Below are positions 4,006 to 37,062 of a stretch of 64,000 nt of DNA, piece by piece; within the stretch, counting starts at the first letter, position 1; every line of letters begins with the position of its first letter. Both the position numbers and the translations under genes were made by a program. The DNA is from Pelomyxa schiedti (lineage: Eukaryota > Protista > Evosea): positions 27,545-91,544 of the forward strand of contig JAHLWZ010000831.1 in assembly GCA_020536535.1 (NCBI GenBank), written 5' to 3'. A model generated the notes under the pieces. It searched no databases. It worked only from the letters and a program-made list of their open reading frames with translations, and was not told the DNA's origin.

Positions 4006-5126
4006 ATAATCGATGTGTTTTTCCCGCCACACGAAACAGCCTTGGGCGCAGAATTCCTGTTTGGACTTTGTTCTCTAAAGAATTGTCTGGAAAAAGAATT
4101 GTCTGGAAAATCTAATTTTTTTTTTATAGTCTATTCTCATTCAAACAGTTGCTGACTTTTAGGTGGTGCAGGTATTTGTAGAAGTGGTTCAAGTTGAGCC
4201 GTGGCAAGAGGCTTCCAAAAGCTGCACAAAATCACGTCAGTAACGGAAAGAAAACTAAACAGGCAAACCGTAATTACTTGGGCTAATAGCAAGAAAAGAC
4301 TACGTTAAAGAACAGTCTCAGCTCAGAAAACGAAGTGGCGCATCTCAAACTTAGAAACCAGTCATCAGATGAAAGATGTAAAAAAGAACTACCTGTTTGT
4401 CGAAGGCAGCAACACAGGGGAGGAAAAAAAAAAAAACGATAAAAAAAAAGTGGGGCACGGGAGCGACCGCGGCCAACCCAGGCCTTTTGATCATAGCGGA
4501 AGTCAGTGACCAAGCCAAAGGGAGACTAACTTATAGTAAGTTATGGGTCTCCCTTGTGCGAGCTCGGTCCCAGCAGCCAGGCAGTTAACCAAAGGTCGCT
4601 AGGCCCGACACTGGAACAAAAAAAAGAAACTAACAAATAAAAAAAATAAAAATCCAGCTCGTATCATTCAGTCCGTGTATTTGTCGCGAGCCTGCAGTGT
4701 TGTGAAAGTAAAACATCGAAAGGCCCCACAAAAAACCCCAAGGTGGAGAAAGAAAAACGAAGGGGAAAAACGAGAAAAGAGGTCTCAGTGCAGTGTGTCG
4801 CTCATTCCCGTTGCCCCACCTGCTACGGCAGCACAATCCGCTCGTACAGCCGCATTAGTTTCTTTTTTTTTGAATGTGAAATCATAATAAATCTTTCATA
4901 AAGCATGTGTATTTGCAACTGCGATCTTTTTGAGGAATGTGGATGTCACAATACAGAGATCTAACCCATAACGGTCAGCTGATTATTTGATTCACCAACT
5001 TATAAGATCTTCAAACAAACCCCTCGAAGGGCTGCACCCGGTTTCGCAAAAGGACAAGGAAATGGGTTCAAAGAATGATATTTCGTATGTTTTTTCAAAA
5101 ATTCTTTGCACACAACACAAAACGAA

Positions 5127-6951
5127 ATGCGCGTCACAGAGGAGGGAGCTATGACTGCCGATGTGACCTCGTGGCAGTGCTTCCCAATCGATGGCGAGCC
5201 GTTCTTCTGCAGGGCGATCGGAACCGGGTCCTGGAACGACCTCTTGCATAGCAACCATGTTGCCACACTCATCATCAAGATGAGGTGCCCAACGGAGGCA
5301 ACAGAAGCGCAGGCTCACTTTTGGCAGCAGCAGAGCCTCAGCACTGAGTATCGGAAGACACACAGGTATCACAACGTGGGTGAGGAGGCGTTCGCGGCCA
5401 TGCAGAGGAACGGGGAAGTGCCTGAGGGCATCCCCCGTGCAGGGTGTGGGTGACCTGGTGCAGGTCCGAGGAGCTGAACAAGAGGCATTCCTTCAAAGCA
5501 ATTTGCAAACGACTCGGCCGCGACCCTGTCACAGGGAAAATGGCTGTGTGTATAGCAGTCCTCTCTTCTCCCAGGTTTCACTTACCTTCGTTGACAGAGG
5601 AGAAATACCCAAGTATTCTCTCAAGTGCCAACAGAAGAAGAGCAAGAATACTACAGTAGTGACCAGGAGGAGGATTACAACTTGAACCAAGAAGACTCCA
5701 TTCAGCTGCGCCCAGACCCGTCGTTGAAGTGGGAACTGAGCACCATACCCATCATTCTAGAGGGTGACCTCATTCCACCACCAAAGGTACTTCTTGCTTG
5801 TTGCCACACTACAGTTTCTCATTCCATATCATAAGCCTCCAATCTTGTCAGATGCGGAGAACCTGGGATTGGCCCTTGATTTGTCAAAAATCAGGGATAT
5901 GGTTTGTGGTTTTCACACCATTTCCTCTCTCAATCTCACCACTCACAGGAGAAGGATTCTGAGGAAGAAGACAACACTTCCACAGAGGAGGCGTTGGAGC
6001 ATGGAAAACCCCCTCATGACGTCGTCCGCTTTCACTCAGCCTGGAAAATGGTGTGCGTAGTCCGTGTGTGTCTGGACATCTCATAACTTGCAAAAGATTT
6101 TGATGCTGTTGTCTCCAGTTGGGTTTGAGAGAATGAGGGGTGTGTGCAGGGGCCTTCTGGAGCTCGTGAAGTCTCTTGAGAGAATGTACTGGAGTTGGTT
6201 GCAATATGATTTCTGCAACCCCAGAGAACGCCAACGCTATAGGGAGAAAAAGTATCCCCCTGCCATGCGGGCTACAGCTATGGCAATAAACTGCTCACCG
6301 TTCTGCCTTCAGACAGTGCAAGAGCTCGAGGTGTATGGAGGTTTCATTGCAAAGCGATTGGAGATACATTGCGCCACCGGTCAAAAACCCACACCCGCGA
6401 CACTTTGGCCAGCAATCATCAGCGCAGTGGAAGGGGTCATGAGAGCCAACACCCGCCCAGACACCCAGCTCATCGTCCACCACTGCCCCCAGGGAATGGT
6501 CGGCAACATCATCCACGCCGTGATGTCGACCCGGGAGCCCAGCAACATCAGCCTGCTCACCATCACCGGGGATGGCGAAATCGCGTTCCCGCCTGGGTTT
6601 CGCCCTCTCCCGCCCGACTCCAAGAGGTGCCTTCCACGAATCGAAATTAAAGTCGACACAGACAGGTCATGTTGCACCAAGACCGACCCTGCCACGGTCA
6701 ACAACAACGAACCACCCCGGGCCCAGACCACTCCCACTCCAACTCCAACTCCCGCTCCAGCCGCCCGCATCAGCGCCCCCGCTCTCGCCCCTGCTCCTGC
6801 CATCATCATAAGCAACAGCACCAACGGCGACACGGTCACGGGGAAGAGGTTGGCGCCGGGGACACCCCCTCTTGTGCTCCTGCCCCCACCAACCACATCC
6901 ACAAACGCTGCTCCCGTCGAAAACAATCGCCGGCGTAGACTGGGGCGGTGA
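5127..6951 (+). CDS. hypothetical protein, possibly frameshifted or pseudogenised
   Basis: Successive + ORFs (5106-5453, 5444-5659, 5625-5834, 6064-6951) with intron-like gaps; apparent 1-nt shift at a C5 run near 5432-5436. Confidence 0.4.
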
Positions 6952-31572: not shown

Positions 31573-32661
31573 ATGGTAGATCCGAAGACAAACGCGGTTA
31601 AGGCGAGAATACTTGTTCAGCAAGAGTGTCCATGGCAAACAAAAGATGGGTGTAGATAGGAGGCAGATGACCCACAGGGAACTTGCTGGTATCGCTGCTG
31701 TTCGTTCATCGTAATACTAACCCCTTTTCTCCCCCTTTGTGTTTTTCTTAAATTACAGAGGGCAAGAAAGATGAACTGAAGTTTTTCAAACTCGGCAAAC
31801 CTTGTTTGTATTCTTAACAAATGTAATTCCGATTTTCACTTTCTCTCCCTCAAGTGAGACATATCACTGACGACAGTGAGTATGCCAACGCTGGAATTAG
31901 GAATCCCAAAATTATGATTACCACAGCACACGAGCCCTCTAACACCTTGCGCCAGTTTGCCAAGGTAAATAACCACGCTTGTGTACCGGTACCCTGAAAC
32001 AACCAAAAGGAAATGTCCAAAGTCATTCCAAACTCTTACAGTTTCAACCGCGGCCGCCATCCCATCAAGGAATTGATACAAGCATGCAGAGAGAATGATG
32101 TAACAGACTTCATTCAACTTTTTGAAACCAGGGGCGTGCCCACATCCATGTTTGTGAGTCACATGCCACTTGGTCCCACTGCATATTTTGGATTGTGCAA
32201 TTGTGTCATGCGGAAGGAAATGGAGAATCCCCCGCCAATTTCTACCCAATACCCACATTTGGTCTTCCACAACTTCACCACACCCCTTGGAAAACGGGTA
32301 ATTTCACCTTCAAATTGCTTTTGCTCGACTTTTATTGACCCATTACTTCCAGGTAACAACAATATTGAAAAGTCTCTTCCCTGTTCCAAAAGCAGACAGC
32401 AACCGCACCATTTCATTCATCAACCAAAACGACTACATATCTTTCAGGTAACGCAAGCATAGGAAGACTTGTTTCTAATCTGCACCCAGACATCACCTCT
32501 ACAAACACGACGGACCTGACATAGCATTGACCAATGTGGGCCCGCAGTTCGAACTCAGGCTGTTCCGTATCACGCTAGGGACCATCGATGACAAAACCGC
32601 ACAAGTAGAATGGGTGCTACACAACTTCATGAACAGCACCAAATCTGCTGTACTACTGTGA
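31573..32661 (+). CDS. IMP4: U3 snoRNP Brix-domain protein Imp4
   Basis: DSEYANAGIRNPKIMITT...LRQFAK|E, SHMPLGPTAYF, PHLVFHNFTTPLGKR, LFPVPK, NDYISFR|HH, VGPQFELRLFRITLGT, VEWVL. Confidence 0.92.
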
Positions 32662-32878
32662 AGTAAGCTTACAGAATAAAATAAGCACCCCGATCTTTTC
32701 CCTCAGAGAAAATGATCACCTGGTGGGTGTTTTTTTACGGAATCTCCTCACCAACACCCCAGAGAGGCAACTCTCCGCCCCTTTTTTTTCTCTGTCCCTT
32801 CTCCGTCACCCGTTAGTGGCGAGAGGTTTTTATCCACCACACTTAAAAAATAATTAGTTATTATTTAAGTAAGCTGAT

Positions 32879-34298
32879 ATGCGATCCTCATTGCTTAGGA
32901 GTACTGTGGTTGTGTGCGTCCTCGTGGCTGCCGTTGTTACTCCAGCATGCAGTAGTAAAATCGGCATCATAATAAGTGATTGGGGTGAAGCAGACTCGTG
33001 TGACCAAGTGGAATCCTTCACAAAGGTATTCACTTGTTTGGTACTACTTTTTTTTTTTTTTCCCACTAACTTGGCATCGTTTAATCTTGAAGGCTGTAAT
33101 GGCGAGCCCTGTCATTGATCAGGACTCTATCCCTCCCGAGATATTCGCAGATATGATTTGGGCTACTGACGGGGGAGACATTATGGCCGAGGTATGAAGC
33201 TTTTGTGCCAAAGTGACTCATTCATTCCTCAGTATTTGACGTTCAATTGTGATACAAAGTTCACTGCAAATACTGTTGCTAGGGCAAGTGTTATGGATTC
33301 GTATCTCAGCTCTTTAGGTTACAATGTGAAAACCTACGTAGGTATCTAAAATGTCGTGTTACCACAAAAAAAAGGAAATTGGCCTGTAGTACTAACTTTT
33401 CTGTTTTCCCCTTGACAAGGTTGGCTTTACACTTCACCATTCCTTGAGGATGTGATGCTCCAGGCCAAAGAAGATGGCGTGGACACCTTTTACATCACAA
33501 CCCCTGAGGTGCAGTACAGTACCCTCATTGGTGAACTTGCGTGGAATTCCTCCCGTGATATAGCAAAGAAGTACAACTGGTCTGATGTACACATTTACGG
33601 GATTCCGACATACTATGACGGTAACAGTTAGTATCTCACAGTGTAAACTTATTATCCCAAAGACATCGATTACAACACTTTCTTGCAACAATGGATTACC
33701 AATGGTATCTCCAACTCATTCCCATCAGTGGATCCTTCAAAGGTTAGTCCCTCCCAATTTCTGGCACAAGTAATGTTCTGAAGATATGTGTATTACTGAC
33801 AGCCCATGGAGTTCCAGAGTCTGACACATTGGTTGACCCCTGGGTCAATCAAACACTGTACACTTTCGATCAAGCCAATACTGCCCTGACTGAACTGGGT
33901 TATTCCGTGTACTTTGGGTGGCAAAATCATGGAGTTCTTTGGACACAACCTACCGACATGGTATTCTTCCATCTGCGCAAAGTGCATTTAAACTCCTCTC
34001 CAATCAACCCAATCATATTTTCCCAAACGTAACAAAATATTAGGACCAGGCTAAGGAGATTGGGAAAGCACTATGCCCATATGCGGTTATCTCTGGGGCG
34101 ATCACTTTCACTGTTGACTGTTCAGAGACCCTGTATGATGGTGTATATGCCCAAAGAGGCCAGATACTGGCAGTTAATCCAAAAAAACAAGTCTCCGTAC
34201 TACCAAACTTCAATGATGATTCTGCCTGGGCAACTTTGGTTGGTGCCATAATGGCCGACTTCATCAGTGGCCAAAAACCAGTTGTACTTGTATTCTAA
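32879..34298 (+). CDS. ferrochelatase-fold (HemH/CpfC-like) protein with predicted signal peptide
   Basis: Spliced motifs KIGIII, KTYV|GWLYTSPFLEDV..QAKEDGV, VQYST, PTYYD, LLTAHGVPES..DPW, FGWQN, WTQP, FTVDCSETLYD, PNFND; N-terminus MRSSLLRSTVVVCVLVAAVVTPACSS. Confidence 0.82.
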
Positions 34299-34395
34299 AG
34301 AAGATAAAAAAAAAAAAAGAAAACCCTTTTTTTTTGGAATTGGGTTCTCTAAGTGTTGACAGGAATTCAATCGAAGAAAAAAGTACAACAAAAAC

Positions 34396-37062
34396 TCAAA
34401 GAGAAGAACTCGTTGGGGTTGAGCCAGAAGTCAAAGCTGAGGCTCCACCCGAGCCAGTGACCCTCTGTGTGTTTCTCAGTCTTGAGCTCATGGAGAGAGC
34501 GGCCTTGCGCATCTCTGCTGCCCGCTGCTGTGGTGATGGTGGGGCTGATGAGGGTGATACAGAAGGGTTCAGGGGTGTTGTTGGTGTCGGGGCTGTGTTC
34601 GGTGTTATTGCCGGCTGTGCTGCAGAAGTGGGTGTTGTTGCTTGTGCAGTAGGTGCGGGTGTGAATGTGGATGCGGCTGAGGAGGAGGCTGTGGAAGTGG
34701 AATTGGGTGTGACGGGATTCATATCTGGTTGTTGTTGTGTTGGGAAGTAGCTTGCGGGTGATAATGGTGATGAGATTGGGGGTGATGTGGGTGTGGTGTT
34801 TGCGGCTGTGGTTGGGGATTGTGTGGGTGTTAGCATGGATTGCGCTAGGACGACCGGAGAAATGGCGCTCTGTTATTGGGGTTTGTTTTTTTTTTTTTTT
34901 TGGTTTGATTAGGGACGGGCAAAATAAAAAGAAAAGAAGGAAAAAACTTGCCTTTCTGGTTTGATGGAGTTGACCCCAGCTGGGTTTCTTGGTCTTGGAA
35001 CGGGAGTTCAACTGGGCTTCCAGGTTTTTGATTTGAACCTTCCTTAACATTAAAATGCATACTTGAGTGAGAAAGTACAACCTGCAGCCTTTCCACTTCA
35101 GCTCTTTGCTCATTTATGATTGACTTATCTTGATTGAGTTCCTTTTGCGTTACTTCTAACTTGTTGAGGGTTGACGTGTGAAATTGTGCTATTTGTTCAA
35201 CTTGGTGTATTGCTTCCTCCTCTACTGTAGTTATATTGGCAATGGGGAAATGTGAAAAATACTTTGTTTTTTTTGTTCAAGAAGGTCTTCTCGATGCTTT
35301 TGCTCTTCAGAAGCTAATCTATCAATTAAGTATTGATTTTCTTTCTTCAAGGTACGAAGTTCAACGTTTACTGATAAGGGTTATTGGAATAATTATATTT
35401 TGCTCTACATTTCAGTTCTTTCTCTGAAACGACATTGTCCTCATCCTCTTCCTCTTGATTGGAAACGACAGTTATGGAATTGACCTTTCCTCTCCGTGTG
35501 GAAACTTTTATGGTTGCCATAGATTCTACCAGGGATTCGCCCTAGGTAGTCATAAGTTGACAATGATGTTGGGTTGGGAATGCACTTCAGCAGCCTTTAA
35601 GCGTTCTTTGAAACTCTATTGAGACGAACTCAGGTTTATACAGAATTAGTATGTCTGCTCACCTCCTCTGACTGTCTTACTGCCTCCGATATTGCTTGTA
35701 TTTTGGCAACGTTCTCTTGATGCAGTTTGTGGTTGATAACTTTTTCGACCATAATTTGCTGAATAATCAAATATAGAATTGCCACAGAATAAGTGATGTC
35801 AAACAGGGTGAAACCAATGTGCACTGTATCAGAACAGAAAAACAAATTGTCACTACACCCATTTAGCACAACACTACATAACCCAAGTACACAAGAAAGT
35901 GCCCATTGATAAAAGGGGAAGACTTGCATTTTGCAGTTCGGCAATCTCTGCGGCATGTTCATCTTCCAACTGTCTTTTCTCTTGTTCAGTTACCCTGTAA
36001 GTACCATTGGCGGAAGAAAAACAATGGAATTAAGAGCAACTTGAGGAGGTCCCTAGACTTTTGCATGAGTTGCTTCATGGCCAACCTCAAGGAGTGAACC
36101 TGGTCACGCAGAACTGGTCCCAAAAGTTAGGTCATCACCGAATACAAATTCACAAGTTAAAAAAAAAAAGTACCTTCAGGATCACTCTCCTCGTCTTCTT
36201 CTTCTTCATCTTCGTCATCATCCTCCTCACCTTGCCCCTTATCATCTGACTCCTCATCCTTCTCTCCCTCATCATCATCAGAATCATCATCGGAATTGTT
36301 ATCAGAATCATCGTCTGCCTCTCGGCTTGACGACAGTCCTGCTGCCTCCACTCCCTTCCCACTCTGATCATTGCCTTGCACACTTGAACTAGTGGTCGGC
36401 GCGATTCTTGCGTTGGATTCAGCTGCGTTTATAGGTGGCGTGTGAGTACCAGCAGGCACATTGTTAACCGGTGAGTGCGAGACTGCAGGCACAACAGGAG
36501 AAGCAGTTATGCACGTCGCCGTGGCTGTGGTTACCTTGGGCTGAACCACTCTAGCATCATTGCCCCCGTCTTCATCCGACGACGAGGAGTCATTTGCGCC
36601 GCGGTTCCTTTCTTCACTCCCGCTCCCGCTCCCACTACGGCTCCGGCTCCCACTCCCGCTGCCGCTGCCGCTCCGACTCCTACTCGAGCTCCCGCTCTCG
36701 CTCCTGCTGCTGTGGCTGTGGCTGTGGCTGTCCTCGTCTGACTCGCTGTCTGCTGCGTCGCTCCGGGCAGGTGGGTTAGTCCTTCCCTGCGGCGTGGGTG
36801 CTCGGCCCGGGGGCGCCTGTGTGGTGCCGCCGGGTTGCTGTGCCTGCACCTGGGGCTGCTGCCTCAGGCCCGTAGGAGGGGACGGCGACGAGGATACGCG
36901 GTGCTGCACCTGCGGCGACGGCGACTGGGCCTGGGCCTGCGCCTGCGCCTGGGACTGGGACATAGACAGGGGCGGCGGGGAAGGGGACGAGGCGGGCGGG
37001 GAGTTTTCAAACAAGCCATTGAGCAGTGGACGGCGAGGAACGCCGCCGGTCCTGTGTGACAT
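34396..37062 (-). CDS. hypothetical low-complexity (S/P/Q-rich, acidic) coiled-coil protein
   Basis: Long first exon (ORF 36157-37263) plus several coiled-coil exons ending SGSTPTSSSL*. Confidence 0.6.

Follow-up and report, generated by a model that had tools for sequence, protein, structure and literature searches.

Why should an amoeba that lives without oxygen, and probably without heme synthesis, carry a ferrochelatase homologue that appears to be addressed to the secretory pathway? By textbook account, ferrochelatases carry out the last step of heme synthesis in the cytoplasm or in organelles. The question is raised by a nuclear gene at positions 32879-34298 (+) of a 64,000-nucleotide stretch of Pelomyxa schiedti DNA (contig JAHLWZ010000831.1, positions 27,545 to 91,544 of the forward strand; this whole stretch is called the window, and positions are counted from its first letter). 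The gene has seven exons and encodes a product of 355 amino acids in an unbroken frame of 1068 nucleotides. We find that this product belongs to a distinct, so far undescribed exported clade of the ferrochelatase family PF00762. The enzyme family is well known; what is new is the exported clade and its presence in an anaerobic amoeba that probably lacks the heme pathway.

All whole-protein analyses were run on P0001, a database protein of 355 amino acids that was retrieved when exon 7 was searched exhaustively against 1.84 billion representative proteins and that contains the seven exon translations as exact substrings, in order and gapless except for two split codons. Its source record is named 'protoporphyrin/coproporphyrin ferrochelatase [Pelomyxa schiedti]': the gene is automatically annotated yet undiscussed. 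Neither the P. schiedti genome paper (PMC8887013), its supplements nor the paper on the symbionts (PMC10579272) mentions heme or ferrochelatase.

A preliminary description, made from the sequence, had recognised a ferrochelatase homologue by four motifs recalling the Bacillus enzyme; all four (YVGWLYTSPFLEDV, TAHGVPES..DPW, FGWQN and DCSETLYD) are present in the product, and profile and structure searches agree with the assignment. P0001 matches PF00762 with 95.3 bits, where the cut-off is 27; the match aligns residues 27-340 with positions 1-312 of the 317 in the profile, and this search reported no other family. The best sequence matches in the PDB, found with phmmer, are the Firmicute CpfC/HemH enzymes of B. 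subtilis, B. anthracis and Listeria monocytogenes (E 5e-10 to 7e-7; 4.8e-10 for B. anthracis 2c8j and about 3.5e-8 for B. subtilis HemH), while human FECH is a marginal match (E 3e-3). An AlphaFold2 model built from an alignment of 29 sequences has a mean pLDDT (predicted local distance difference test score) of 92.9 and a pTM (predicted template modelling score) of 0.88; only residues 1-20 are ill-defined, with pLDDT below 50 in the leader, and the first beta-strand spans residues 28-32. In Foldseek searches with this model, human FECH (2qd3) is the best structural match, with a template modelling (TM) score of 0.84, a root-mean-square deviation of 2.4 A over 332 columns and E 6e-21; the Bacillus and Listeria enzymes have TM scores by target of 0.82-0.86 (LmCpfC 0.85). 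SirB and the CbiK-like FetB/IhtB are distant (E about 1e-6; FetB, 9b86, TM 0.44 and E 2e-6). As modelled, P0001 has the two-domain Rossmann-like ferrochelatase fold. Membership of the CbiK/IhtB-type family was considered and rejected, as only PF00762 was reported and the TM score of FetB is far under those of the ferrochelatases.

Other searches returned little. A word-index homologue search with P0001 found only P0001 itself, the structural search of the Atlas found solely canonical fungal and plant ferrochelatase clusters, single-exon searches against PDB sequences gave only noise, and exon 7, used by itself as query in the Atlas feature search, scored at most 0.86, against unrelated lipoprotein families.

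Alignments indicate that the catalytic core is intact, as the preliminary description had said of the catalytic His and Glu. H220 aligns with B. subtilis H183 (TAHGVPE against SAHSLPE), is the equivalent of human H263 and is unchanged in all sequences of two alignments (29/29 and 22/22); E299, in DCSETLYD, aligns with the Glu of DHLEVLYD, the equivalent of B. subtilis E264 and human E343, and is likewise invariant. Residues H220, E299, D296, S152, W265 and F293 are invariant across the exported-type subfamily and the canonical enzymes, and Q259 is also conserved. The catalytic His is the feature by which a published survey recognised functional ferrochelatases (PMC8529089), and P0001 has it.

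With the Firmicute CpfC/HemH proteins P0001 shares the two-domain fold and the equivalents of His183 and Glu264, and the Tyr13 position of B. subtilis is aromatic (W35 in P0001, Y or F in its relatives); the N-terminal propionate-binding region lies outside the phmmer alignment. The differences are considerable: identity in structural alignments is only about 17-19%, the Lys87-His88 pair is Leu-Tyr and QSE is QNH in P0001, and CpfCs are cytoplasmic, leaderless and part of a complete coproporphyrin-dependent pathway. Compared with human FECH and yeast Hem15, P0001 keeps the equivalents of H263, E343 and D340, but it has neither a mitochondrial presequence nor the C-terminal [2Fe-2S] extension and it belongs to a separate clade with a long stem.

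The N-terminus has the features of the hydrophobic signal peptide that had been described. The predicted leader (codons 1-26) consists of an n-region with two Arg, a hydrophobic core of 13 residues and a c-region, TPACSS, in which positions -3 and -1 hold small residues; its maximum Kyte-Doolittle value over 11 residues, 3.57, is the second highest of the set analysed, and the PF00762 domain starts directly after it, at residue 27. By established signal-peptide rules the core appears too short for a membrane anchor and the leader does not resemble the amphipathic presequences of organellar proteins. Between an in-frame stop codon upstream and the first strand there is no start codon other than M1, and a product with the full fold must therefore carry the leader. 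The C-terminus of P0001 is neither of the KDEL type nor of the glycosylphosphatidylinositol-anchor type. Most likely, the protein has a cleavable N-terminal signal peptide that sends it into the endoplasmic reticulum.

The subfamily of P0001 was collected by the exhaustive representative search with exon 7 and by alignment-driven scans; loci from pattern scans were mostly ordinary Campylobacterales ferrochelatases that share ISFT(V/I)DNSE, and served as outgroup only. P0001 and its relatives, which have just 24-30% identity to it, form a clade with support of 100/99-100 and a long stem apart from the canonical enzymes. They share a signature S(S/D)(Y/F/W)G(D/E) where the fold begins, a one-residue insertion ahead of ISF, and (Y/F/W)QNH in the place of the QS(K/R) of canonical enzymes. 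Three branches make up the clade: a leaderless branch (P0004, P0010, P0011 and P0013) that includes a Spirulina metagenome-assembled genome (MAG), a branch of Gram-negative bacteria with a Silvanigrella MAG and several 'Pseudomonadota' MAGs, and a eukaryotic branch of marine-metagenome and EukProt sequences, one of which, P0007, has genes for a 2796-amino-acid myosin and for SND2 as neighbours on Tara contigs. The Atlas feature search found clusters of 80-154 members in Bdellovibrionota and Cyanobacteria, and a scan for motifs in 185,579 species genomes brought up five strong loci only. A full-text literature search for a 'periplasmic', 'secreted' or 'extracellular ferrochelatase', or for an exported PF00762 protein, found none.

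Phylogeny had been proposed as a check for lateral transfer. The distinct clade is firm, but P. schiedti is placed only weakly as sister to the marine eukaryotes (89/85, falling to 83/55 with denser sampling) on a very long branch. Cys41 and Cys88 are present in 9/9 eukaryotic members, among them Pelomyxa, and absent from all bacterial ones, which gives independent support for a single eukaryotic group.

Leaders are found in 18 of the 22 family members. In the Gram-negative branch a classic Sec leader is present in 9/9 complete N-termini and ends just before the start of the fold, (K/R)(I/V)G(I/V)LF; in the eukaryotic branch all eight marine members with complete N-terminus have a hydrophobic leader (9/9 with Pelomyxa). 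Cys214 and Cys282 occur together in 17/18 leader-bearing and 0/4 leaderless members (Fisher's exact test about 7e-4, a hand calculation, 18/26334, uncorrected for relatedness), and these cysteine patterns are those expected of disulfide-stabilised exported proteins. The secretory routing proposed in the preliminary description is strengthened by this, because the leader is conserved across the exported subfamily and co-occurs with the cysteine pair.

A canonical HemH is encoded in each of the five bacterial genomes that carry a subfamily member (271-408 bits, against 145-150 for the subfamily member), indicating that the exported form is an extra paralogue. In three of the five, PF00762 is represented by a third copy as well, which is more divergent and has a leader of the lipoprotein type (..LGAC); these copies (L178, L179 and L180, on G005:C5, G004:C108 and G001:C79) read SHGD and FLND where the subfamily reads SYGD and FQNH.

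The genes next to the bacterial members vary. A SOUL heme-binding gene (L164:4041-4634 (-)) lies divergently about 200 bp from the exported member P0012 at 4836-5963 (+). L084 has an apparent operon (+) of a HupE/UreJ-type metal permease (67-588), the exported ferrochelatase-like gene (639-1754) and a YHS/TRASH metal-binding protein (1775-2326). A chlorophyllase-like hydrolase upstream of L017 is a marginal match (29 bits, cut-off 26) and occurs once, and DsbA-like thioredoxin genes adjoin several subfamily members.

The P. schiedti gene itself is made up of the following features:

32870..32872 (+): in-frame TAA stop codon, 6 nucleotides 5' of the start codon, as read from the sequence
32879..33025 (+): exon 1, residues 1-49, in P0001; RNA coverage none
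32879..32956 (+): predicted signal peptide, codons 1-26, within exon 1
33093..33191 (+): exon 2, residues 50-82, in P0001; RNA coverage none
33233..33341 (+): exon 3, residues 83-118 and the first base of codon 119; RNA coverage none
33420..33620 (+): exon 4, residues 119-186; RNA contigs from 33470 on, junction of intron 4 confirmed
33663..33742 (+): exon 5, residues 186-212; both flanking junctions confirmed by RNA contigs of three runs
33784..33960 (+): exon 6, residues 213-271, with Cys214, catalytic His220 (codon 33805-33807) and the family motif WQNH; junctions confirmed
34044..34298 (+): exon 7, residues 272-355 and the stop codon, with Cys282 and Glu299 (codon 34125-34127) in DCSETLYD; junction of intron 6 confirmed in four runs

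All six introns of this exon model are GT..AG and 41-83 nucleotides long. RNA evidence came from the contigs of four single-cell RNA-seq runs (one sample, one study): these skip introns 4, 5 and 6 to the base (42, 41 and 83 nucleotides, with GT..AG ends). Three exons match PF00762 weakly even on their own (exon 4, E 0.018, profile positions 97-159; exon 6, E 0.015, positions 186-242; exon 7, E 0.0018, positions 259-312), and the order of these matches along the profile is that of the exons. The P. schiedti genome has a single copy of the gene. One RNA contig, of run X2, begins downstream of the leader at 33470, inside exon 4, and carries a SMART template-switch oligo. We rejected this position as a transcription start and read the contig as a truncated cDNA: it is a single contig, begins within an exon and has no usable in-frame start downstream.

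The gene is a real, expressed, single-copy nuclear gene of P. schiedti. The idea of an artefact, whether through contamination with bacterial DNA, a pseudogene or a wrong gene model, would have its grounds in a draft assembly made from single cells full of bacteria, and is effectively refuted: contamination is excluded by the six spliceosomal introns, the spliced RNA (three introns) and the eukaryotic neighbours on the 91.5-kb contig, while 355 open codons match the database protein and the fold prediction is confident.

On its upstream side the gene is preceded by pieces of an open reading frame at 32013-32661 (+), which we take to resemble a Brix/IMP4-type ribosome-biogenesis gene; the 3' end of this neighbour lies under an RNA contig (32600-32699). 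Downstream, runs of A/T homopolymers at 34296-34344 part the ferrochelatase-like gene from a transcribed region (34347-35113), which has RNA contigs over 34347-34500 and long minus-strand open reading frames rich in Thr, Pro and Ser.

What could a ferrochelatase do in such a host? The preliminary description had remarked that the find would gain weight if the host lacked heme biosynthesis, and this is probably the case: exon-by-exon scans of the P. schiedti draft genome (a single-cell assembly of 52.4 Mb in 5337 contigs) found no ALAD, porphobilinogen deaminase, CPOX, canonical ferrochelatase or heme oxygenase. Anaerobic protists have in general lost heme synthesis (PMC3547853), and the result agrees with this. 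The same genome encodes at least three cytochrome-b5 domains. Loci of the URO-D superfamily were considered as HemE and rejected, as their profile matches are MtaA/CmuA-like. They form a multi-copy set (L003-L010: C751:57246-58291, C721:110740-111489, C411:6487-7152, C301:4475-5161, C1163:4654-4986, C891:50874-51680 and C811:66060-66191); an intronless open reading frame of 393 amino acids (L004:1090-2268) has its top scores to MtaA/CmuA methylcobamide methyltransferase models, far under the cut-offs. Such an expansion is odd in an amoeba that hosts methanogens. Pelomyxa is known to harbour methanogens and vacuolar bacteria (PMC10579272).

Metal exchange on tetrapyrroles is a likely job for the protein because the amoeba has hemoproteins, no heme pathway or heme oxygenase was detected, and it lives free of oxygen. 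Heme oxygenases need oxygen, and Pelomyxa lives without it. As the best explanation of the whole, held tentatively and just short of an even chance, we propose a lumenal or secreted class II chelatase that acts on tetrapyrroles of prey or symbionts, with iron removal from heme as the favoured direction. The signal peptide would lead the protein through the endoplasmic reticulum to the endolysosomal or phagosomal lumen, to a symbiont-containing vacuole or to the cell exterior, and its job would be to exchange the metal of tetrapyrroles that digested bacteria or symbionts supply. The favoured version is the reverse ferrochelatase reaction, in which Fe2+ would be taken out of heme, with the ring unbroken, in an acidic and reducing lumen. 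Assays of the reverse ferrochelatase reaction have been run at pH 5.5, under argon and with reductant.

For a dechelatase or tetrapyrrole-binding function the only precedent would be among extracytoplasmic chelatases that are unrelated or related at a distance. In the periplasm of Bacteroides iron is taken out of heme with no cleavage of the ring, by an enzyme described as still unidentified, and a reverse ferrochelatase reaction has been proposed for IhtB, a CbiK-like protein exposed on the surface of P. gingivalis. IhtB/FetB resembles the protein proposed here in that a class II chelatase fold lies outside the cytoplasm of an anaerobe, where it is proposed to strip iron from heme without ring cleavage; it differs in that it belongs to another family and is a lipoprotein in an iron-transport operon, and its dechelatase activity is putative. 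The periplasmic CbiK of Desulfovibrio is of the same extracytoplasmic CbiK-type group.

Several points weigh against this proposal. Exons 1-3 have no RNA contigs in any of the four runs, leaving the 5' end with the leader exon without transcript backing, and the signal peptide is a prediction from sequence features and family comparison. The pairing of the cysteines is a prediction from their joint occurrence in the family, and their association with leaders spans about three clades, that is, few independent events. The three N-glycosylation sequons noted at the outset are present, but we reject them as evidence for export, since 2.2 are expected and the probability of three or more is 0.40. 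Around the bacterial members no conserved operon was found, only scattered contexts. With the NCBIfam hemH equivalog model TIGR00109, P0001 scores 67.5 bits, under the cut-off of 124.6 that its bacterial relatives P0005 (142.7) and P0011 (138.3) narrowly exceed; given this score and the very long branch, the activity may have changed. Finally, the absence of the heme pathway is probable only, coming from a draft assembly and exon-wise scans, and the exon-by-exon scan for ferrochelatase missed the present gene itself.

The alternative that survives best, and which we consider unlikely, is a ferrochelatase working in the forward direction, making heme from scavenged protoporphyrin or coproporphyrin, in the cytosol or an organelle if the leader is unused and otherwise in the lumen. 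The intact catalytic core and the NCBI name speak for it, as does the need of the amoeba's cytochrome-b5 proteins for heme, and there are precedents among auxotrophs with a laterally acquired enzyme: Brugia malayi, Strongyloides venezuelensis and trypanosomatids are likewise eukaryotes that lack the pathway and keep a single bacterial-type ferrochelatase. Theirs, however, are canonical forward enzymes reported to be mitochondrial or cytosolic, whereas P0001 comes from an exported clade. The family-wide leader and the cysteines linked to export also argue against a forward enzyme, as do the coexistence of bacterial members with canonical HemH and the score under the hemH cut-off, and heme made in the lumen would need to be imported.

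Rather improbable is a non-catalytic binder of tetrapyrroles or metal, secreted or lumenal, for example a hemophore or chaperone built on the chelatase fold. Entamoeba secretes heme-binding proteins, which is a precedent for the preferred reading as well, and the SOUL gene beside P0012, the YHS/TRASH and HupE/UreJ genes beside L084, the long branch and the low equivalog score would all fit such a carrier. Its catalytic His and Glu and the other active-site positions, though, are strict in 22/22 members at 25-30% identity, which indicates that the chemistry was retained.

More improbable again is an enzyme that inserts or removes Ni, Co, Zn or Mg, and not iron, in tetrapyrroles from prey or symbionts, such as chlorophyll derivatives, corrinoids or F430. 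Near the active site the family has QNH, with an invariant His peculiar to it, in place of the canonical QS(K/R), the permease beside L084 is of a Ni/Co type, a chlorophyllase-like hydrolase lies upstream of L017 and Pelomyxa houses methanogens and vacuolar bacteria; the match to chlorophyllase, however, is marginal and seen once only, and the contexts are not conserved.

Iron removal from prey or symbiont heme outside the cytosol thus remains the reading that we prefer for the Pelomyxa protein. That an exported branch with an intact active site occurs in organisms that either possess canonical HemH or have no pathway at all implies another role, in another compartment. The clade would be periplasmic in some Gram-negative bacteria, among them Bdellovibrionota-like ones, and secretory in marine protists and Pelomyxa. 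In a wider form of the proposal, which we regard as doubtful, the whole exported clade would be an extracytoplasmic, oxygen-independent heme dechelatase with which phagotrophs and bacterivores recover iron and porphyrin from the heme of their prey, ring intact. Dechelatase activity has been inferred physiologically in anaerobes, without a firmly assigned enzyme, and the clade is a concrete candidate protein for anaerobic recovery of heme iron, the type of activity seen in Bacteroides. If true, this would be a first lead on the handling of heme and iron in an archamoeba that depends on the heme of its prey or symbionts, and the members from marine eukaryotes hint at a way in which iron bound in heme may be reached in the sea.

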